Shown here in pieces: positions 1 to 12,971 of a stretch of DNA of 64,000 nucleotides (its first letter is position 1; every line of letters starts with the position of its first letter). The notes below the pieces were generated by a model, which saw nothing but the letters and a program-made list of their open reading frames with translations, ran no database searches and had not been told where the DNA came from. The DNA lies in NCBI GenBank assembly GCA_021613535.1, contig CP075495.1, positions 6,758,001 to 6,822,000 on the forward strand. Reading direction: 5' to 3'. The DNA comes from Adineta vaga (lineage: Eukaryota > Animalia > Rotifera). The translations under genes were made by a program, and so were the position numbers.

Positions 1-881
1 GACTTCACTAGAGAAAGACTATTCCAATTTAAATCTACAATTAGAAACAGAAAATAGTTATTTGTCAGATCATGAATTAAGACATAAACGAGAAGTGTAA
101 ACGAACGAAAAACTGAAAATGATTGTTCTTAATAAAACCCCCGCATGTTTGTTTCATTTAGTGAACTTGTTAAACAACGACAAGCTTCACCGACTGGTAC
201 AGCTACATCCGTGAATATTGTTGAAACAGCTGTTGATTTAGAAGATCGTTTAGCTAAAGAATTTTCTAATTTTCAATTTATGTCAAGAGAAACAGGTATG
301 TAACATGTGTTTCTTTTTCTTGATTTTCATTTATTTCAATATTTATTCTTCTAGAGGATGATAAAACAAATAATCTTCGTAGTCATAATCGTAAACTTGA
401 TGATAATTTGTTATTGATTGTTCAACAAAAAGATAATCAAATAGATAAAGATGAATGGATTTTTCCGGAGAAAAACTATGATGGTGAACCATCTTTACGA
501 GCAGTATGTCATTGATATATTCAACAATCATGTGAAATATATTTCTATTGGTATTAGGTTATTGAACAACTGATTCCTACATGTGGAAATCTTCATGTTC
601 AAATAGCAGGTAATGCACCATTAGCATGCTATAAAAATGATGCAGATACATCTTCGAAAAAAGTAAGACAAATATCAGAAAATATTTCGTTTCATTAAAT
701 ATGTTCTCTTACATAGATTTTCTTCTACAAAGCTGAATATCTAGCTGGTGTTGTGAAACAATTTTCTACTTTGAAATCATCTCCATATAAAGATCATGCA
801 TGGGTAACTCATGCAGATCTTCCCAAATATTTGTCACCATCATATTATAAAGCTGTCAAAGATATGTTGTTTGTGTTCTAA
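1..881 (+). CDS. MRPL46: Mitochondrial ribosomal protein L46, 3' part (5 exons visible, 5'-truncated by window)
   Basis: Spliced reading gives ENSYLSDHELRHKRE...RETEDDKTNNLRSHNRKLDDNLLLIV...WIFPE...GEPSLR...GNAP...IFFYKA...DHAWVT, matching recalled mL46 motifs; GT-AG introns of ~55-65 nt; TAA at 879-881. Confidence 0.85.
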
Positions 882-1233
882 GGAAGAAAAACGTTCTCTC
901 TAGGATAAATAAATATATTATTAGAAAACAATTATGTTTTATTTTAGTATATACACAAGAAGGATCCAGAAGCACTCGTATCTCTCTTTGAGATCATTTA
1001 TAAATAGAATGATAGATTCACTGAATATTGGTGGTTTTAAATCATAGTACAGATTTACCTTTGGTAGTATTCTTTCTTCTAACTATGCTATACGAAATGA
1101 AATAAACAAGATTGATATTTATACATGTTCATACTCTCTCAAGATGATATCTTCATCAAAAATTGTATAACATATAACAATTAAATTTTGTAACTTTCTT
1201 TTATTACAGAAGTCTTTAGAATAGAAGAAAGAT

Positions 1234-2544
1234 TTAAATACTAAATATACTACAGATAGCAAAAAGCATCATGGATATAAAGTATTTATTACCATTGCCA
1301 GTAGCTCGATCATATTGTACTTGATACAATCGATTATTTCCATCTTCACTAAATAGTAAACTTCCATCCTTTAATACTAATAATCCAACAGGTCTTCCAA
1401 ATGTTTTTGGTCCTGATGGTTCTGTCAGAAATCCATAGACGAAATCTTCGTAATATCCCATTGGACGATTGGTGTCTTTGTTAAATGGAATAAAAACAAT
1501 CTTATAACCGGTTCCTTCATTTTTATTCCATGATCCATGTAATGCAGCGAATGCACCATTTCTATATCGATCAGGAAATTGTGAACCATTATAGAAAAGC
1601 ATATCGAGAACTGCTGAATGAGCTTGAAAAAGAACATCTGGTGTTTGTGTTTTTGATACTAGATCCGGTCGTTCACTTGTTCCATTTGGAAAACGTCGTC
1701 GTGGATCGATCAAAGTTGAGCTAAGATACGCATAAGGCCAACCAAAAAATTGATTTTCTTGTACGCGTGTAAAAAAATCCGGTACAAGATCATCACCGAG
1801 AAGATCACGTTCTTGACAAGCAACATATAAATCATTTGTTACTGGATGATATGCCAATGCTGTAGGATTACGAAGCCCATCAGCGAATGTTCTCTGGTTT
1901 CTTCCATCGAGATTTGCTTGTTGAATCGATGCTCGTGGTGAATCTTCGATATTAACATTCGATCCTGAACCAATACCAACCAAAAGTTCATTGAGAGATC
2001 TTGTTAATACAAGCGATCGTGTCCAATGACCAGTTCTAGCATAAGTCATGATTACATCACCGGTGCCTTCAATTTTTCGACTACCAGTTGTCCATGAATA
2101 ACGACGTAGTGCGTCTCGATTACCAACATAAAAGAAATTGTTAAGAAAAGCCATTCCATAAGGTCGACTCAGATTATTTGAAGCGTTAGCAAATGTCATT
2201 CGTTGATCTGGATATCCATCATTATCTGTATCGATCAAACAGGAGATGCGATCAATAGATGATTCAGCCACGATTATATCACCAGAAGGTGTATAGATCA
2301 AAGTTCGTGGCTGTATGAGATCTTGAAAGTAAGGTTTGACCGAAAATCCAGTTGGTACAAGAAGTTCAGGATCTGTTGGTATAGGAATAACAATTGCATT
2401 CTTGTTAGCCGATTCATTAGCATTAGGCAATGGGAGATTGTTTACTGTGATTTTAATTGCTTGCGGTACAAATGTAACGTTTCGCGTATGAATTTGTTTG
2501 AAACAAATGATAAATATAACGTAGAAGTACATGAAAACCTGCAT
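1234..2544 (-). CDS. Glucose/sorbosone dehydrogenase-family (PQQ-dependent beta-propeller) protein, bacterial type, intronless, with signal peptide and C-terminal hydrophobic tail
   Basis: Single ORF; first ATG at 2544 (the track start 2601 is TTG). Motifs HWTR, GSGSNV, GLRNP, ERDLLGDDLVPDF, FGWPY, FQAHSA, HGSWN, GRPVGL, DGSLL are characteristic of bacterial L-sorbosone dehydrogenase-like proteins. Confidence 0.85.
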   Translation of the reverse strand: MQVFMYFYVIFIICFKQIHTRNVTFVPQAIKITVNNLPLPNANESANKNAIVIPIPTDPELLVPTGFSVKPYFQDLIQPRTLIYTPSGDIIVAESSIDRISCLIDTDNDGYPDQRMTFANASNNLSRPYGMAFLNNFFYVGNRDALRRYSWTTGSRKIEGTGDVIMTYARTGHWTRSLVLTRSLNELLVGIGSGSNVNIEDSPRASIQQANLDGRNQRTFADGLRNPTALAYHPVTNDLYVACQERDLLGDDLVPDFFTRVQENQFFGWPYAYLSSTLIDPRRRFPNGTSERPDLVSKTQTPDVLFQAHSAVLDMLFYNGSQFPDRYRNGAFAALHGSWNKNEGTGYKIVFIPFNKDTNRPMGYYEDFVYGFLTEPSGPKTFGRPVGLLVLKDGSLLFSEDGNNRLYQVQYDRATGNGNKYFISMMLFAICSIFSI

Positions 2545-4357
2545 TTCTTGTCTTATGTTTCTTCTATAAATTTCAACGGAAAAAGGACAAAATATTTTCA
2601 ATGCAGTACTTTATAAATGTTAAAAAAAGAACAAAATACGTACTCAAATAGTGAATGACTAAGCAAATTTAATCCTTATCATGCTGTATGCAAGTATGTT
2701 CTGTTAGTAATAGAACTTCACCTTGATATTAAAGAACAAACTTCGTTCGTTTTCTTATTTTAACGACTGTTCTATTTTGTTTTCAATCGATTAAAGTTAA
2801 AGTAATCGTATTATTTCTATATCTAATAATAAAGAACTATATTTATTTTCAAATGTCAAGTAGAATTCTCTAAGATTTTTCATCCTAGGAGAGTGAGAGA
2901 GAGAGAGATGATCTCTTACCACATAAGTGAAATGTGTTTTCGAGTGAAGTACAACAAAAGAATAGGATTGATCAAAATGATATTAGAAATATACATATAC
3001 GTTGTATTTATCTCGTCTCATTTACTTTTTGAAAAACAATATACTTTTTTTGCTTCACTATTTCCATCATTTATAGCTCTATAAATGGCAAAAGATAATA
3101 AAGCTTTTTAATTTGAAAAATGATAAACTTTGTCTTTTACTAAAATAGAATCGATCGTTTGTTCGATACATAGTTTTCCTAGTTTATGCTTCAAATTAAA
3201 AGTTTAGTCTTTCATATGTATTGAATAATACTTTGCATTGATTTTTCTATTTTTGTTAAAAAATAAATACGACGATTCATATAAACCAGTAGTATAGCTT
3301 ACTCTCATTCCATTATTATGGACAAAGTTCGTATCACAATCTGTTGTTGAAATTTCATATTCAATTTGTTTATATAAAGAGGCGGAGTTGAAACGTTTGT
3401 GTGGTAAGGCTTGCTATTTATTCCAGTCGTCTGCTCTTCTGATTCATTTGTTTTGATTTAAAATCACATCTTTGTTTTCTAAATTCACATTGAAATTAAA
3501 TAGACCATTGTATGAACACAATTAAGGGCATTGACCGTAAAAAATAATATACTAACACATGATGTTCGACTTATTTCGATCCAAGAGTTCATTTTGATCA
3601 CAATATACCTTCACTATCTAGATATACGTATATTACTAACATAATTTATTAACAATCTATTTTGTAGTTTATTTATTTTGACATTCTACCTTACTTATTA
3701 AACCTAATCATATTTATTCAGAAAAGAAAATCTTATCGAAGAATCTCAATTGTATTATGTAATAATACAAATCGATCTCTCGTTTATGGTCATCGGAGAG
3801 TTAATAAACAGAACAACGATAATTAAAATTCATATCGAAGAAACTTGAACGTTAGGTAATCGTCCAGATCACTAAATTTATCAAGATTGAAAAAGAAATC
3901 ATTTGCAGATTGTTGAACATGACGAATTATGTATATGTATTGCCAAATAGAACGGAAGAATGGAACATTTAACTCTTTGTGATAGTAAAGATGTGATGGC
4001 TTTCATCTATATGGTAATCATTAAAAGTTAAATTGAACATTAACAAAACGTTTTTGATTATATTTCATGCTTATAATAATTTTCATACATAAACATTTTA
4101 ACACATTGTCTATTCAGTTAAACTATGTTGATATCTAAGTCGGAGAAATCGATACAGAAATTTTTCCTTTTGTTCTCTATGTCGTTTTATACTTCACGCT
4201 TTCATTGAAAATCATGCATTCGTCTTGTATAATCGATATACTATTTTTAGGGATGCATTTTTTTTTCTAAAATATTTAATCACAGCATATACAGCAAAGT
4301 AAAAGAAACAACTAACGACATGAGTGGCTTATTCCAGCCTCCGATAACATATTTCTG

Positions 4358-4548
4358 ATTGGTCAAGCTATTTGATTGATATAAAGAAGTTTAAATGAGT
4401 CACTCAGGTGTGTAAGAAATAGTCATTCATTCTTTCGTTCGTGTTTTGTCAGCATATTGTATCTTTATATACGTCATCATTGTTTATGTTTTATAAATCA
4501 TCGTAAATTAATCAGGATTTGAATGAACAATATATTCTTTCTTATCAG
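4358..4548 (+). promoter_or_regulatory. Possible upstream promoter / non-coding first exon of the moesin gene
   Basis: ATTGG (CCAAT box) 4358-4362, AP-1-like TGAGTCA 4396-4402 and a donor-like CAG|GTTTGT at 4548/4549 in a long ORF-free region upstream of moesin; acceptor-like tracts at ~6790-6812. Motifs are short and could be chance. Confidence 0.25.
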
Positions 4549-6928
4549 GTTTGTGTTTTATTTTGTAATGTTTCTTAATTAAAACATGACTGTTTATCTC
4601 AGTAAATCATCCATTTTCCTATTTTCTCTTTTATAACTTGTCAAAAATATGTCTTTATACATCGTTTGTGTATCTACATATATTTTATTGTATTTACACC
4701 TTCAAGGCATATACATACGTATTTGTCTCAAGTTGTGACAAGAGCCAAACCAATTCATGCTTTGTTTTCTCTGTCTGTCCTCAAGATCGGTCATTCATTA
4801 TTTTTCTTTTGTCTCGTTTTTCTGTCGCAGACGACACTGAATAAATTAGTTCGATCGATACCATTTATTTATTTCAATTTTCTTTTTATCTTGAATAGTC
4901 GAATAGAAAGATAAAATTGTACAAAAATGACACGTTATCATCAAATAGGTACACACAAAGACACGTTCCTTCGTACTCGACCTCATTAGAAGGAGAAGAA
5001 GAAGAAACAACGTATACTTCTAGTATCGTTTGTCCGTTCATTCTTCTCATTCTTTTCTCTTTCTCCTTCATCGTACAATATAGGTACACAAAATTCTCTC
5101 TTTCGTTGTAGTAAATTAATGGTTGAAATCTTACGAGCCCTCATCGACGCCGCTGTTCGTCTGTATTATTTGTTGTGTATCTGTCTGCTGCTTCTCTTTC
5201 GTTTTCTCTCTTTCTCACACATAATTGACTTTCGTCTTATCTCTCTTTTTTCCTCGCTCGAACTCTCTCTCTCCCTCTTTTTTTCTTCCCTTCTTTTTAG
5301 TTGTTTGTTCACCCTATTGCTTTTGTTAAAACGGCGGCAATAGTGGATACTACTGTCTTAAGATAAATGCGAAACAACATGCGTGAGACTTAATCCTCGA
5401 TACATGTAAAAAAAAAGAAAGAAGATCACTGCTATTTATTTAGAATGGTGAATTATTTTTTCTTTTTTCGTTAATTTTTATCGTCGATGTTTTTTTTCGA
5501 TTTTCGTAAGAAAACAACAACAACAAAATGTTTTCGTGTACATATATTTTACTTATGCATTTATATGTAATTGAGTAAGTTTAATATTTATTATGTAATG
5601 TTTACATGGAGTTGAATAGATGAATACTGTGAACATAATTCGATAGTCTGTGTATTCGCGTGTTATACTTTAATTACATATTGCACTGGCAGTAACTACA
5701 CAATTGACCTGAATATAAAACAAGGAAAAAGAATAATGGGTCATAAAATCGATGAGAAATGCAAGACGATGATACGGTTGTAGTGATACTATCGATTTAA
5801 AACAACGTTTAATTTCATCGATTTCACATCGATAAAAATTGAACATTTGCATTCATATGGATGCACGAGTAGGTCAAGATGATGCACACGTTTTTTGTTC
5901 TCTAATTAATCTTTTTATTTTGATTTGTTTTTTTTTACTTTTTGAAAAATGAATCACTAAGAAGTATTGAGTAGAAAAGGATTATTTGAGAAAATTTTAT
6001 TGATAAAATGCATAATAAACATTTTTATCTAATGAATCAAAGGTTATATGAAATCCTTTAGTATGTTACAAAGAATGACAGGAATATGGCCTTCAACCTT
6101 CTTTTTTTCACACGCGATCACGTCTTAAGTGAGTTTCTTACCAAAAAATATTTTACATTTTTGTCGTTATATTCACTTTGTTTTAACAATCATCTCATTC
6201 TTTTCGCGTTTTTTCTTCTAGTTTTATTATTCAGCAGATATTGAGATATCTGCGACAGATTATATGTGTACGTATGTCTCGAAACGAGTACTAAAACAAA
6301 AATTCTCTCTCTAGTTATATTCTTCTTCTATTCACATGATAAATTTAAGATAATCTTCATTTTTCTCTCTTATGTCTTCAAGAATTTGTACATTTTTTGA
6401 TGTACTAGCACGTGCGTTATGTTCGAAAATTATATCTCATGATCCTTTTCTGCTAACAATCAGTCGATCGGTCGGCCACACACGAACCTGGTCATGGTTA
6501 CTCCGTGTTATGTCATATTTGTTCATATGTTGTACGCCCATTTTTTTATTCGTCGTCTTAGCTCATATAACGAAACACATCTTCTATTCACTGAGATTTG
6601 TCTTTAGGCAATATTACTATTGCACTGTGATGTTAGTCAGCGAAATATTATACTTCAGAATATGACCACGACAATGAATCACCGTTGTTTTTCTTTTAGT
6701 GAATTAAACAGCAGCAACAGCACTGTTGATATACATTGCATTTCTTTTCCTCCTTCTCCTCCTCCTTCAAGCTCCTTTTTTTCTCTTTTCTCTATTCAGT
6801 CATTCGTTTCAGATAAACGCACATATACATTGTGGACGACGACGGATAGACGATATCTCTATGTATAAAATATTGTAAAACAATAACGATTCAACTTTCA
6901 AATAGAATATACAAACAAAACTTCAACA

Positions 6929-9900
6929 ATGTCACCAAAAGCCGTAAGTTGATTTATTAAAATTATTATTTTTTGTTGTCATCGTTGTTGCTGTTATCGG
7001 TTTTTTAATACAGGATGAAAATAATGTTTGAAAAAAAGTTAATTTTCTCCTTTGCGATGATGTTTGTTGATTAAGAATTCGTTGATCATTTTGTCGATTA
7101 ATTAGATGAATTTGAATTTTCGATTTTTTTTCTTGAGTTATATTTTCTATTGAACTAAACGATTCCGTTTCATCTAAAGGTGTAGGATTTGATGAGTCAA
7201 TTTGATTGATATTCGGATATATTTTTGTCATGACTCGTAGTTGTAATTTGATATAGAGTTTAGTATTCATCGAATTTTTTAATGGATAGGCTCGATTAAC
7301 AGACCAATCTTTTTCTTCGAGAAGTGTTTTGATCGAAAATTCGATTGTACCAATGAGATGATTCTTATTATTTGAATCGTTGATATTAATTTGTAATAAT
7401 GATTGTTCAGGATTAACAAGCATAAACATGAAACTTTTCATCCAACATGGATTGGTTGAATTTTTAATTATTGAAGTTTTCTCTTCATAATTATCGATCT
7501 TAATTGAACAAAATGGATAAGGTTGAAGAGCTTTTCCATGTTGAGTTGATGGTAATTGTTCGGCTCGTTCAATATAAACGATTAGTAATGATGTAGATAA
7601 TGTATGAGACGTTTTTGATAGCATCATTTGAATATGTTCTTGATTTATTTGTTGAATTTGTTGGAAATAATCACGATTTGTTGAGAGATAAAACCAATTC
7701 ATACGAATATGTATAGTCGAATTATTCGTACCAGCTAAATCATACCATTGATCGAGTAGATCATTTTTATCTTTAATACTTTCAATAGGAATATTTATTG
7801 TACCAATATAATCATCCGAACCAAGATCAGCATCGAATATAGATATCTATAGCTCTCAAAAATATCGATTGTAATGAGTTCATTACTACTATTTCATTCT
7901 TTCCGGACCCGTTAGCTGTTAATGAAGACTATCAATTAGATGAAAGATCTAGATCAATCTTATATGTACAACTATGGTCGTTTACTAGAATAAGTAACTT
8001 ATCTTCCTGTACCATAGATTAATAGTATTAGATAGAAGAACGATTCGTGTTTGATTGAGAATAAAACACATACCTGAAGTTGTTGTGTGTTGGATTCTTC
8101 AATAGGTATTTCAAATGTTTCATACCATTTGGGATTGTTATGCCTTTGTTTATGTGTTTTTAATTTATATTGTCCAACACTAATTGTAACAAAAGCATCA
8201 ATAGTATGTTTTGTTAGAACTAATGAATTATCAAGTTTTGGAAGATGTTTTGCTTCAATAATATCGATTCGTAGTATTCCATCAGGTCGAGGAATTTTCA
8301 ATTGATTAATATCGATTTCATTCATAAAGGCAATGATTAATCGATTAGGTATAACAATACTTGATTGTAAGATACGTTCTAATGATAACATCAGTAAATT
8401 ATGTAAACCTGGAATTTCAATAATATTTGCGATATCAGTTAAATCAAAATCGATTGTTGGTGTACGTAGAAAAAAGACTTCTAAAGCACCAACAAACGGG
8501 ATTTTTGATACAATTGATTTAAGAATAATTCGTAATTCTCCATGTAGATACAATGATTTTATGCCAGCTTTTAAACTATGGTACTTCATTTTAATTTGCA
8601 TATCACCACCATAGAAAAATTCCGTATCAAGAATAATTTCATCCGATCGAATATTCTCTGTATAAATCTTAATTCCACCTAAGCGCGGTGGAAAATCGCC
8701 GAAATCAATACGTTCAAATGAAAGACTGGAGATTTGTTTTTTAATTTCTGGTTCAATCGTATTTTTAACAAGTTTTTGTACATAATCAGAGATTGTCGGC
8801 CATAATTGTGCAATAAATTTATTTAACCATTCACATCGATCAAAATCCGGATAGGAAATCCATGATGGGAATTCATTTAGACGTTTTTCAATTGCTGGAC
8901 GTACATCAGTTGTTAATTCTTCGAAGAAGTTTATACGTTCAAGACGTAATAAATGAAATCGCCGTTCGATTGTTTCTAGAAAAGCAAATAGAATTAACCA
9001 AATCAATGAAAGACCATATCGACCAAAGAACCAAAATAGAATTGAATAGATTAAACATCGTAGAAATATTTTCACTAGATTATAAATATCAAATAGAATC
9101 GTTTTAAGATCATGTTGAATTGTTGTCTTCAATTTTTTTCGATTGATTTTTTTCATTTACGAAAAATATGTTTCATAGGAAAAAATAAAAGCGCTTTTCT
9201 TTTCAGGTCAATGTACGAGTACTTACTATGGACTCGGAACTCGAGTTTGCCATTCAACCAAATACTACCGGCAAACAACTTTTTGATCAAGTAAGTTCGA
9301 TCTAGTCAAGCGGGATAAAATGAAAGATAGAAAAGGTTCGATACTGATTCTTATCATTCAATGCAGACTGTTATTTCCGACTGTTCTTTTAACTAACATA
9401 TGGAGAGTTCGTCTGCTAGAATAAATTTTGAAGAGATCTTCTTTTCTATAAATATTTGATTTTCAAATGTTTAGTTTCTAAATCTCTTCTACATCTAAAT
9501 GTTTTTATTTAGGTCGTTAAAACGATTGCTCTTCGTGAAATCTGGTTTTTTGGCCTTCAATATACTGATTCAAAAGACTTTCCATGTTGGTTAAAATTAA
9601 ACAAAAAAGTTCTAGGTCAAGATATCAAAAAGAGTTCATCGCAACCATTAACATTTAAATTTCGTGCTCGTTTCTTTCCTGAAGAAGTCTCTGAAGAACT
9701 TATTCAAGAAATAACACAAGTAGGAAGGAAATTCTATTTATTGAAGAAAACAAACATTTCTATATCATTTTTGTGTTTGTCTTTTAAATAGAAACTTTTC
9801 TTTCTTCAAGTAAAAGAATCGATTCTTACGGATGAAATCTATTGTCCACCTGAAACATGTGTTCTTCTTGCATCTTATGCAATGCAAGCAAAACATGGAG

Positions 9901-12158
9901 ATTTTAATGAAGAAATACATCGACCAGGATCATTAGTTAATGAACGTCTGTTACCTAAACGTGTTATGGAACAATTTCAATTATCACCTGAAGAATGGGA
10001 AAAACGAGTAGTTAATTGGTGGAAGGAACATCGAGGAATGCTCAAGTAAATGATTTTCATTGTTGAATTAATTTAAATTCGTGGATTTTATTTTAGAGAA
10101 GAAGCAATGCTTGAATATCTTAAAATTGCTCAAGATTTGGAAATGTATGGTGTTAATTATTTTGATATTCGTAATAAGAAAGGAACTGAACTTTATCTTG
10201 GTGTTGATGCTCTTGGCCTTAATATTTATGACAAACAAGACAAGTATAAAACAATAAAAAAAAAAGTTCTTCTTCGTTCTATTCTACTTGTCTCCAATTT
10301 AGATTAACACCTAAAATTGGTTTTCCATGGAGTGAAATACGAAATATTTCATTTAATGACAAGAAATTCGTAATTAAACCAATGGAAAAAAAATCACCCG
10401 ATTTCATTTTCTATGCACCAAGACTTCGTATCAATCGACGAATTTTATCACTTTGTATGGGCAATCATGAATTATATATGCGTCGTCGAAAGACTGATTC
10501 AATTGAAGTACAACAAATGAAAGCACAAGCACAAGAAGAAAAATTAGCTCGTCTTCAAGAACGGTAGATTTTCTTGTTTAATTTTTCTTTCAAATATATT
10601 GTTTTGATCTATGTAGAGAACGAATTCAAGCTGAAATTGATCGTCGTAAACAGGCTGAACAAGAACGTGAAGCAATGAGAAGAAAAGTTGAAGATCTTGA
10701 ACGAAATGCAGCTGAAGCTAGACGAGGTAAGAAGGATTTCTGATCTATCTTAGTGTTTTAATTTAATTTAGAAATCTATCAAGATGATTTATAACTAAGA
10801 GTGTATGTGAGATGCTATATTTCAAAAAAAATCTTTGATTTCGGTTATAAGTTTCCTCTTTTCTATTTCACATTGTTTGAATATTTGCTGATGATTTTTG
10901 TTTGGTTTTTATTTTCCATTGAATTGATTTCGAAAACTTTAATAGATAAAATGATGTGTTTTTGTTGTTTATAGCTTTGGAAGATCAAAGTCGAATAACC
11001 AAAGAATTAGAAGAAAAACGAAAACAAGCGGAAGATGCACAATCACGTTTGAAACAAGAACGAGAAGAAGCGGAAAAAGAACATGAAAGAATGATGGAAC
11101 GTGTTCGATATGAACAAGAAGAAAAGGATAAAATTGTACGTTTAACAAATTAAGAATGAAATCCTTGTTATTCATTAACACGTTTTCATTGCCGTAACAC
11201 ATAATCTTGACGATTTGTTCATTTGTTTTAGGTTCAAGAAATTGAAGAAGCTCGCCGATTAGCCGAACAAAAAGCTATAGAAGCTCAACAAAAAGAGAAT
11301 GAAGCACGAGAGCTTGAAGAACAATTACGTGAAGCAAAAATGAGAGTAAGTCAAAACGATTTTATATTGAATAGAAAAGACATTTTTTTATTCGATTACA
11401 GAAATTGGTAATTTATACATTTTCTTGTAAACTAATATGAGCAAATGAAAGCATTATCTCCTTTTCTGCATGAGATATGCATCTATACGTATATAAATGA
11501 TCTTCTTATTCTTCTTTTAGTATCGTCATAAAAAACGAGGACATTCTCGTCCTTGGGTAGGCTTTTGTTTTTCGAATAAATAAAAGGGAAAAGGAAAATG
11601 TTCACACCATAACCTATCTAGAATTTTCTTGTAAAGATCAATTCTCATCACTATTGTGCATTTTAGGTACTTCAAAGTCAACAACAACAACCGAATAATA
11701 ATCATCATTATATGGAACATCCCGGCGAATACGGTAATCCTATAGAAGATGAAGAAAGTGATGAAGAAGATAACAGTACAACTCGTAATGGACGAGGTAA
11801 TACAAGAATAATATCAATTTTTAAGTCTTCTCTTTCATTTCCTAGGCGTTGAACTTCGTACTAATGAATATGCTTCACGTCATGAAGAAAATCGTTTAAC
11901 TGCAACAACAAAAGATCATAATATGAAACGAAAACTTGAAGTAGGAAATAGTTCTTCTTATCATTTCATTATACGTTTGTTTTCTATCTTTAGGCACTCA
12001 AAGATGAATTGGGTTCTGTTCAAAATTCCAACAAGGTCACTGAAAATGATCGTTTACATCAACAAAATGTTGCATCAGGTCGAGATAAATACAAAACATT
12101 GAAAATGATACGACAGGGCAATACGAAAAAACGTATCGACGAATTTGAATCTATGTAA
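6929..12158 (+). CDS. Moe: Ezrin/radixin/moesin (ERM) protein, ~12 coding exons
   Basis: Exon 6929-6943 (MSPKA|gtaagt) splices in phase to 9207 ([28 protein letters not shown]); FERM motifs [17 protein letters not shown] and [12 protein letters not shown]; coiled coil; C-terminus [26 protein letters not shown], stop 12156-12158. Confidence 0.95.
6932..9156 (-). CDS. ESYT: Extended synaptotagmin-like protein (TM-SMP-C2A-C2B), 2 exons, nested antisense in the moesin intron
   Basis: Exons 9156-8074 and 7846-6932 joined by a 227-nt GT-AG intron give ~665 aa: hydrophobic hairpin, [17 protein letters not shown] (SMP start), C2A with Asp ligands ([10 protein letters not shown]), second C2, basic tail. 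Confidence 0.9.
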
Positions 12159-12971
12159 AAAAAAGCATCCGAAAAACTTACTTCTTATCATTTCTTCTTC
12201 GTCCATTTTTATTATTATTATATCAATGGTCATTCCACGAAAGTTCATTTCATCTTTCTCTTTTTTCTCTGCGTGCATGTTTGGGCTGCTGTTATTTTCT
12301 TTTTTCTGTGTTTTCTCTCTTTCTTTCTGTTTATTCTTCTAAACTGTAAGCAGCACAATCGAACAATCATATGATTATTATTATCATTATTATGAATATC
12401 ATTCCAAAAAAAACCAAGTCGTCATAACCGTTTGATTCCATTAATTGACCATCTTATTTGATATGTTTCTTTCATTGATAACGTATAGTTAACTAAAAGT
12501 TATCGTATGTTTATTCTTGAAGAAACAAAAACTTCTCTTTTTTCGTCTCTTTTCCGTCTTTGAAAGTGTGCTTGTGTGTGTGTATGTAGTTAAGACAACT
12601 AAGAATTTCATCGTGTTCGTTATTTCCTTTATTTCGTCTTGTTCTTCTTTCTTCTTGTGGTCTATTAGTTCCTATTTTTTCCGTGCTTTCTTGCTCGTTG
12701 ATCTTGAAAATAAACACCCATTCGCACACGTATGCACATATTCAACTTCAGACTATCCTTATTTTAGTTGCATGATTAGAGTAAAATCAAAATCAGTCGA
12801 TGATATGGAAGAAAACTACTTTTCAATATAAAATACATTAAAAAAAAGATTGGATGTAGAAGAAGAGAATAACTTATTTTCTTCTTTTTAGAGTGGTTTT
12901 AAATTTATAAGTATCAGCTACTAAGACATTCTATGTGTTTTTTGATGAAACTGTGTCTTTTGTAGATATTC

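Follow-up and report, generated by a model that had tools for sequence, protein, structure and literature searches.

An intronless AA12-like PQQ dehydrogenase gene of bacterial ancestry in the bdelloid rotifer Adineta vaga, apparently refitted with a eukaryotic-type leader and a GPI-type tail

Introduction

Whether animals use pyrroloquinoline quinone (PQQ) as an enzyme cofactor is an old and unsettled question. [quoted passage not shown] An initial annotation, made from the sequence alone, described it as a bacterial-type PQQ/sorbosone dehydrogenase, acquired horizontally and converted into a secreted protein with a glycosylphosphatidylinositol (GPI) anchor. Massive gene transfer into bdelloids is well established, and the transfer itself is therefore unsurprising; a PQQ enzyme in an animal, by comparison, is to our knowledge not well known, and none of the publications searched links rotifers with PQQ enzymes. 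The questions are thus where the gene came from, whether it still encodes a quinoprotein, and what has become of the two ends of the protein. The reading favored here, with a probability of roughly 0.7, is that of a functional A. vaga gene derived from a bacterial AA12-like PQQ dehydrogenase, refitted with a signal peptide and a GPI-type tail, and encoding a PQQ-using ectoenzyme.

An AA12-type propeller with a conserved cofactor site

Within the soluble glucose dehydrogenase superfamily, the window protein belongs to the AA12/TrAA12-like branch. Its AlphaFold2 model is a six-bladed propeller (pLDDT 85.7, pTM 0.85), for which Foldseek ranks the fungal AA12 structures 6i1t, 6jt5, 6i1q, and 6h7t (TrAA12 and CcPDH) first to fourth, with E values of 1e-19 to 3e-20 (3e-20 for 6i1t), followed by bacterial sGDH/Asd and then by HHIP. 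A profile of the rotifer family (alignment A1) matched the TrAA12 structure 6h7t over its full length (E 1e-15) and also matched the AA12 domain of CcPDH. Furthermore, a precomputed annotation assigns PF22807.3 to the window protein and to all of its relatives, and the proteins of A. ricciae, A. steineri, and Rotaria are annotated automatically as PQQ-dependent pyranose dehydrogenase domain proteins; a protein-atlas search returned generic sorbosone-dehydrogenase/AA12 clusters only. The label PQQ/sorbosone dehydrogenase given in the initial annotation is thus right as to the PQQ type, with the ligands kept, but the closest structural kin are AA12 proteins rather than classical sGDH or sorbosone dehydrogenase.

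In CcPDH, the PQQ ligands are Arg273, His363 (the catalytic base), Arg430, Asn431, His539, His560, Trp563/Asn564, and Arg621, and the calcium ligands are Ser449 (backbone) and Asp451 (PMC6881789). In a HMMER alignment—that is, by sequence rather than from a cofactor-bound structure—R273, H363, R430, N431, H539, H560, W563, N564, and R621 of CcPDH align with R80, H173, R225, N226, H309, H336, W339, N340, and R384 of the window protein, respectively; a chain offset of 239 reproduces R273, H363, R430/N431, H539, H560, and W563/N564, and the counterpart of R621 was placed through the F-R-P-V-G-L motif. The calcium ligands Ser449 and Asp451 correspond to Glu245 (backbone position) and Asp247 through the E-N-S-V-D segment of TrAA12, an indirect and moderately certain assignment, with Asp present in 113 of 120 rotifer-clade proteins. 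The H-G-S-W-N loop, which is reported to be specific to AA12, is identical in the window protein and CcPDH, and the PQQ contacts of classical sGDH (Lys377, Arg406/Arg408) were not found in the window protein, which shows the AA12 pattern instead. All eleven PQQ, calcium, and catalytic positions are present, each being kept in 95 to 120 of the 120 rotifer-clade proteins despite an overall divergence of 25–45%. Because these positions are kept across the family, the protein looks, as far as sequence can tell, like an intact AA12-type quinoprotein and not like a relic.

Descent from a bacterial gene

The best 120 word-search matches are all proteins of Adineta, Rotaria, or Didymodactylos or from metagenomes (53–77% identity), and no named animal other than bdelloid rotifers was found among the matches to the window protein, so that the check for best matches across metazoan phyla turned up none. 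In an exhaustive search of representatives at 50% identity, the best reached 46–54% identity, and those with an assignable name or position proved to be cyanobacterial (Thermosynechococcaceae, Cyanobacteria bacterium SID2) or to lie on compact prokaryotic contigs. A scan of bacteria with alignment A1, using one genome per species, recovered 593 confirmed relatives, while the same scan with the single window protein as query recovered none; counts of bacterial relatives given here refer to the best 80 of the 593. Seventy of these 80 loci belong to Cyanobacteriota, with 50–55% identity and E values of 1e-120 to 1e-147, and most of the organisms are filamentous formers of mats or crusts (Microcoleus, Nostoc, Coleofasciculaceae, Leptolyngbya, Scytonema, Tolypothrix), as the cyanobacterial resemblance noted at the outset had suggested.

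In three trees, built by quick searches with SH-aLRT support, the rotifer sequences form a single clade (SH-aLRT 100) on a long stem, which outgroup rooting places within a mainly cyanobacterial radiation. The gene is descended from a bacterial gene, most likely of a cyanobacterial donor. The union of all rotifer copies in one clade fits one old transfer followed by expansion, and since Didymodactylos, Rotaria, and Adineta all carry the family, the transfer is older than the split of these genera. The proposal of horizontal acquisition therefore holds, with best matches in bdelloids only and then in cyanobacteria, except that it concerns an old bdelloid family that has expanded, with this gene as one member, and not a single event. 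A fungal origin, prompted by the best Protein Data Bank matches, was rejected because identity to fungal AA12 is 18%, versus 50–55% to cyanobacteria.

In Nostocales loci, the gene immediately downstream, on the same strand, encodes a small cupin of the mannose-6-phosphate-isomerase C-terminal type (L026:2913-3407, L040:2717-3115, L072:2758-3165), and in two Leptolyngbyaceae loci a secretin gene lies upstream of the dehydrogenase (L053:3-1136, L049:2-1171). No cytochrome partner was found adjoining the cyanobacterial dehydrogenase genes.

Apparent replacement of the N-terminal leader

The open reading frame is uninterrupted from ATG (2542-2544) to TAA (1234-1236). The ORF program had begun it at an upstream TTG; the ATG was used instead, there being no in-frame ATG farther upstream, and the same initiator Met is found in the A. 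ricciae and A. steineri orthologues. The hydrophobic N-terminus reported previously is a core of 13 residues (3-15), followed by Ile at −3, Thr at −1, and then the conserved N-V-T-F start of the mature protein. By a rule-of-thumb call, nearly all 120 members of the rotifer family carry such a plain eukaryotic-type leader, ending directly before the N-V-T-F start of the propeller. In about 70 of 78 bacterial relatives, a hydrophobic leader ends in a lipobox-like Cys and is followed by a linker of about 30 residues rich in Pro, Thr, Ser, and Gln; a strict lipobox pattern caught 52 of them, and most of the others are visibly of the same kind. Thus, the cyanobacterial N-terminal lipobox appears, on comparison of the leaders, to have been replaced by a eukaryotic signal peptide in rotifers. 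A minority of the relatives has RTX repeats or other added domains instead of a lipoprotein leader (L075, L077, L084, L089, L097, L098, P0121, and P0123).

N-glycosylation sequons occur at 1.46 per 100 residues in the rotifer proteins versus 0.34 in the bacterial representatives—about four times as densely, with an Asn-rich, AT-biased composition contributing to the rotifer value—and six are present in the window protein.

A rotifer-specific C-terminal tail

The last propeller strand ends at Tyr411, and the 25 residues that follow (412-436) comprise small and polar residues and then 15 hydrophobic residues running to the stop codon. Ala414, Gly416, Asn417, and Gly418 are candidate attachment residues, followed by a short spacer and the hydrophobic end, Phe422-Ile436 (nt 1237-1281). 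By rule of thumb, this is the C-terminal layout of a GPI-anchored protein. The tail is missing in all 80 bacterial relatives, 75 of which stop within seven residues of the end of the aligned match—that is, the end of the last propeller blade, just after R-I-Y-R-x-Q-Y—in agreement with the ending near RIYRxQY given earlier for bacterial homologues. In tblastn, four Microcoleus-type loci seemed to match the tail region, but these matches were rejected, as the alignments run through the stop codon into unrelated sequence.

Among 117 rotifer-clade proteins, 73 have an extension of 22–102 residues (median 31), in which a linker rich in Thr, Ser, and Asn leads to a hydrophobic stretch at the terminus that usually ends no more than five residues from the stop; in 48 of these proteins, the final 15 residues include no charged one. 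The machinery that such a signal would need is represented by a multi-exon gene for the GPI transamidase subunit PIG-T (Gpi16, PF04113), matched above the cut-off at G000:C3:13.18 Mb. The hydrophobic end of the window protein, with 15 residues and nothing after them, is too short for a membrane span, and the tail fits a GPI signal. Because the bacterial leader is of the lipobox type whereas the rotifer protein combines a plain leader with a GPI-type tail, an N-terminal bacterial lipid anchor appears to have been exchanged for a predicted C-terminal eukaryotic one. Anchoring as a rotifer novelty, as first proposed, is therefore accurate for the tail, which the bacterial relatives lack, but not for lipid attachment, since the donor proteins, as predicted lipoproteins, would already have been lipid-anchored.

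Integration, copies, and selection

The gene sits on a chromosome-scale contig of 16.3 Mb among animal genes, as initially annotated. In A. steineri, whose orthologue is 75% identical, the order is moesin (FERM/ERM), extended synaptotagmin (E-Syt), the dehydrogenase gene, MRP-L46, an FGGY kinase, and a TANC1-like gene, so that moesin lies beyond E-Syt and linkage is kept on both sides; in A. ricciae, it is kept on the MRPL46 side. The GC content of the gene is 0.37, and that of its third codon positions (GC3) is 0.206, versus 0.18–0.19 in the neighboring E-Syt exons, which bears out the host-like composition claimed earlier. The gene is under purifying selection: ratios of nonsynonymous to synonymous substitution (dN/dS) against the A. 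ricciae and A. steineri orthologues are 0.15–0.24 (NG86 method, with dS near saturation).

At least six intact copies and one fragment make up the A. vaga family. The products of two paralogous loci are identical, residue for residue, to hypothetical proteins recorded for A. vaga at NCBI (P0037, P0048). The paralogues at loci L004, L005, and L006 contain GT-AG introns at shared positions, one within the G-W-P-F/A-Y-L motif, as judged from exon matches and junctions; L006 also bears the tail. The second intron, at the shared G-W-P-F/A-Y-L position, measures about 320 nt in L004 (1181-1504) and about 50 nt in L005 and L006. The fragment (L011, G000:C5:16424735-16424974) covers only residues 310 to 426, approximately, has a TGA inside the match, and is probably a pseudogene remnant.

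PQQ supply and possible redox partners

A whole-genome family search of the rotifer gave no match to pqqC, a weak negative with no positive control, and only a weak, generic radical-SAM match to pqqE. Likewise, no pqqC match above the cut-off was found in the five cyanobacterial genomes with the nearest relatives, with no positive control, nor in four non-cyanobacterial genomes bearing homologues, which had been sought as that control. Microcoleus mats are grazed by bdelloid rotifers, and Microcoleus itself is reported to be without a pqq operon (PMC7367855); its 2-ketoglucose-dehydrogenase-like genes probably use PQQ from neighboring Proteobacteria (PMC7367855). Since pqq matches are wanting in both the rotifer and donor-type cyanobacteria, and Microcoleus is reported to depend on its neighbors for PQQ, scavenged PQQ would be the expected mode for both donor and recipient.

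Characterized relatives oxidize L-fucose, D-glucosone (2-keto-D-glucose), and D-arabinose. As to possible redox partners, at least eight matches to LPMO_10 (AA10/AA15-type), the family of lytic polysaccharide monooxygenases (LPMOs), were found in the A. vaga genome. They lie at C6:2399136, C1:4688523, C4:4384990, C4:9632406, C4:8540276, C4:8541744, C1:8190898, and C2:6903648, and one lies about 80 kb past the end of the window. A search of the rotifer genome for the AA8 cytochrome (PF16010) gave no match, and its control was also silent. In fungi, an AA12 enzyme has reportedly served as a reductant for LPMOs; by analogy, a role of the rotifer dehydrogenase as LPMO reductant is possible but speculative.

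Features of the locus and its surroundings

The coordinates are collected in Table 1. No Rfam match was found in window positions 1-12000. An MRPL46 homologue of A. ricciae, uncalled in that record (L016, forward, about 11368-12190), has 76% nt identity to window 44-877.

Between the start of the dehydrogenase gene and the stop of E-Syt, a block of about 2.6 kb (window 4302-6958) contains no long open reading frame and no Pfam or Rfam match. It shares 76–81% identity with the sequence upstream of the orthologues in A. steineri and A. ricciae, a level equal to that of the coding exons, and the adjacent stretches are unalignable. Because its six-frame pieces match alike in all frames and on both strands, the block looks non-coding—a long untranslated region, a long non-coding RNA, or a regulatory block. 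In A. ricciae, it stays beside the dehydrogenase gene though E-Syt and moesin are not adjacent. A strong strand asymmetry is seen at 5001-5500.

Table 1. Features of the dehydrogenase locus in window coordinates
Feature	Position	Strand	Basis
Coding sequence, AA12-like PQQ-type dehydrogenase, intronless, 436 codons + TAA	1234..2544	−	100% match to P0001
Predicted signal peptide, residues 1-20	2485..2544	−	Rule of thumb; layout common to nearly all 120 family members
Six-bladed beta-propeller catalytic domain, residues 21-411	1312..2484	−	AlphaFold2, Foldseek, 6h7t profile match
His173, counterpart of catalytic base His363 (CcPDH) / His144 (sGDH)	2026..2028	−	His in 115/120 rotifer-clade proteins
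Arg225-Asn226, counterparts of CcPDH Arg430/Asn431 (PQQ quinone oxygens)	1867..1872	−	Kept in 119/120
H-G-S-W-N loop (His336, Trp339, Asn340), AA12-specific PQQ carboxylate binding; CcPDH His560, Trp563, Asn564	1525..1539	−	Alignment
Glu245-Arg246-Asp247, aligned to AA12 Ca ligands (Ser449 backbone, Asp451 side chain)	1804..1812	−	Via TrAA12 alignment
25-residue C-terminal extension, GPI-type signal by rule of thumb	1237..1311	−	No counterpart in bacterial relatives
Polyadenylation signal AATAAA, 29 nt past stop	1200..1205	−	Sequence
MRPL46 exons, converging on dehydrogenase 3′ end	about 8..888	+	tblastn with A. steineri MRP-L46 gene region
E-Syt gene, SMP_LBD + C2 domains	6932..9290	−	Domain matches and synteny

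Comparison with known quinoproteins

The nearest known proteins are the uncharacterized cyanobacterial 'PQQ-dependent sugar dehydrogenase' lipoproteins of Microcoleus, Nostoc, Coleofasciculaceae, Leptolyngbya, and others, which share 50–55% identity over residues 21-411, the same motifs, and the same propeller end. They differ in having a lipoprotein-type leader, a linker of about 30 residues, no C-terminal tail, and, in some, RTX repeats or added domains, whereas the rotifer protein combines a eukaryotic leader, a larger number of N-glycosylation sequons, and the tail. Pa2KGDH, a characterized bacterial homologue of CcPDH that the Microcoleus genes are said to resemble, is described as membrane-bound (PMC6881789, PMC7367855).

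The AA12 domain of CcPDH (Coprinopsis cinerea, 6JT5/6JWF) shares with the rotifer protein the six-bladed propeller, the PQQ ligands, the H-G-S-W-N loop, the N-terminal Arg, the catalytic His, an Asp-type calcium ligand, and an extracellular location, the last being predicted for the rotifer side. At 18% identity, CcPDH is nonetheless a freely secreted protein that carries an AA8 cytochrome and a CBM1 module as fusion partners, with no AA8 match found in the rotifer genome. TrAA12 (Trichoderma reesei, 6H7T/6I1Q/6I1T) is a single-domain secreted protein and the best structural and profile match; it differs, again at 18% identity, in its long fungal insertions, weak activity on L-fucose, weak affinity for PQQ, and lack of a membrane anchor. 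The sGDH GdhB (Acinetobacter) and Asd/YliI (E. coli) share the superfamily, the fold, the catalytic His, and the Arg-Asn pair, but with 13–15% identity, PQQ contacts of the Lys377 and Arg406/Arg408 type, and a two-carbonyl calcium site in place of the AA12 arrangement. The rotifer protein is a well-defined animal variant of the cyanobacterial-type AA12-like quinoproteins and not a new kind of system.

Proposed history and function

The donor gene would have encoded a periplasmic, lipoprotein-anchored, AA12-like PQQ-dependent sugar dehydrogenase, most likely cyanobacterial, and would have been acquired once by the ancestor of all living bdelloid rotifers and then multiplied. After the transfer, a eukaryotic signal peptide would have displaced the lipoprotein signal and the Pro/Thr/Ser/Gln linker, codon usage would have turned host-like, and a short C-terminal extension with the GPI-attachment layout would have arisen in the window copy and most others. 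With the leader swapped and a GPI-type tail in place, the mature protein would most likely be N-glycosylated and lipid-tethered to the outer face of the rotifer cell membrane, with soluble secreted paralogues alongside. There, it may bind Ca2+ and PQQ acquired from its bacterial food or its surroundings, as is also supposed of the donor cyanobacteria, and may oxidize a sugar, or an aldose resembling one, with a hydride passing to PQQ and His173 acting as the base. The analysis establishes the bacterial ancestry, the integration, purifying selection, the fold, the kept set of ligands, and the tail as an addition peculiar to rotifers; secretion and GPI anchoring are inferred, and so are the use of PQQ, the class of substrate, the electron acceptor, and the tissue.

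Alternative explanations

Several observations weigh against the scheme set out above. In single-sequence Pfam searches, the window protein scored just below the cut-offs for TrAA12 (PF22807.2; 29.2 versus 30.9 bits) and GSDH (PF07995; 24.5 versus 25 bits); the superfamily link is sound, as the cyanobacterial sister P0122 passes GSDH at 57.8 bits. A few Planctomycetota, Bacteroidota, and Pseudomonadota fall in the same polytomy as the rotifer clade. The exon-by-exon whole-genome family search missed MRP-L46 (PF11788) although MRPL46 exons lie in the window, and its negatives for pqqC and pqqE are weak for that reason. In TrAA12, a characterized relative, activity is very low and affinity for PQQ weak (PMC6881810), so conserved ligands are no guarantee of a robust enzyme. 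Finally, parsimony puts at least 19 changes of tail state on the family tree, a count that gene-model error may inflate, and anchored and soluble forms therefore seem to interconvert.

The last of these points also lends itself to the explanation that the enzyme was acquired as described but that its hydrophobic end is no GPI signal, being instead a transmembrane or tail anchor, a signal for retention in the endoplasmic reticulum or for degradation, or neutral read-through into AT-rich 3′ DNA, which readily encodes peptides rich in Phe, Ile, Leu, and Tyr. The tail is less conserved than the propeller, with 11–13 of its 25 residues identical to those of the orthologues, and some family members have 5–12 polar residues after the hydrophobic stretch. 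We regard this explanation as unlikely. The stretch of the window protein ends at the stop codon, too short for a membrane and with no cytosolic residues, and the combination of signal peptide, small residues, Ser/Thr/Asn stalk, and hydrophobic end is the classical GPI layout. Moreover, the closest orthologues share a polar stretch, Y-F-x-S, and 11–12 hydrophobic residues, and A. ricciae, A. steineri, and numerous relatives from metagenomes keep the length, the stop position, and this pattern, which argues for selection and not accident.

A propeller that is catalytically inactive or independent of PQQ, with HHIP-like binding, another cofactor, or none, is quite unlikely. HHIP, an extracellular animal protein with the same six-bladed GSDH-like fold, is among the Foldseek matches, TrAA12 is a very poor enzyme in vitro, and the search of the rotifer genome for pqq genes was without finds. 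Yet the match to HHIP is far weaker (TM score 0.48, 12% identity) than those to AA12, and HHIP is non-enzymatic and of vertical animal descent, so that the rotifer protein is not derived from it; the donor cyanobacteria, also without pqqC above the cut-off, are thought to scavenge PQQ; and retention of the eleven positions through 25–45% divergence is hard to explain without a cofactor. An intronless, bacterial-like gene might also suggest contamination or an assembly artefact, or vertical descent from an early eukaryote with loss elsewhere, but both are scarcely credible. The linkage to MRPL46, E-Syt, and moesin is conserved in independent assemblies of other Adineta species, GC3 equals that of the host, and a eukaryotic leader instead of a lipobox, a polyadenylation signal, and spliceosomal introns in paralogues also count against a contaminant; vertical descent is opposed by the much higher identity to cyanobacteria than to fungal AA12 and by the nesting of the rotifer clade among bacteria.

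Implications

Taken as an acquired and functional enzyme, the gene may encode the first animal PQQ enzyme and offers a concrete test case that can be cloned. The lineage retains no fewer than six copies per genome, and the complete PQQ/calcium site of the enzyme has stayed intact since before the bdelloid families split. It also illustrates how a bacterial periplasmic lipoprotein may be refitted for the animal secretory pathway, through a swapped leader, sites for glycosylation, a tail of the GPI type, and introns gained later. Mat-forming cyanobacteria, as the likely donors, and grazing bdelloids, as the recipients, live in the same habitat, where other bacteria have been proposed to provide PQQ as a public good (PMC7367855).

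A bolder proposal, tentative and given somewhat less than even odds, is that bdelloids possess a set of genuine PQQ-dependent ectoenzymes, in part GPI-anchored and in part soluble, with PQQ obtained from their bacterial food. If so, PQQ would be a true vitamin-like enzyme cofactor in an animal, and the function of the bacterial N-terminal lipoprotein anchor would have passed to a eukaryotic GPI anchor at the C-terminus. As a further possibility, these enzymes may feed electrons to the LPMO-type oxidases of the rotifer in polysaccharide digestion, as fungal AA12 enzymes do.

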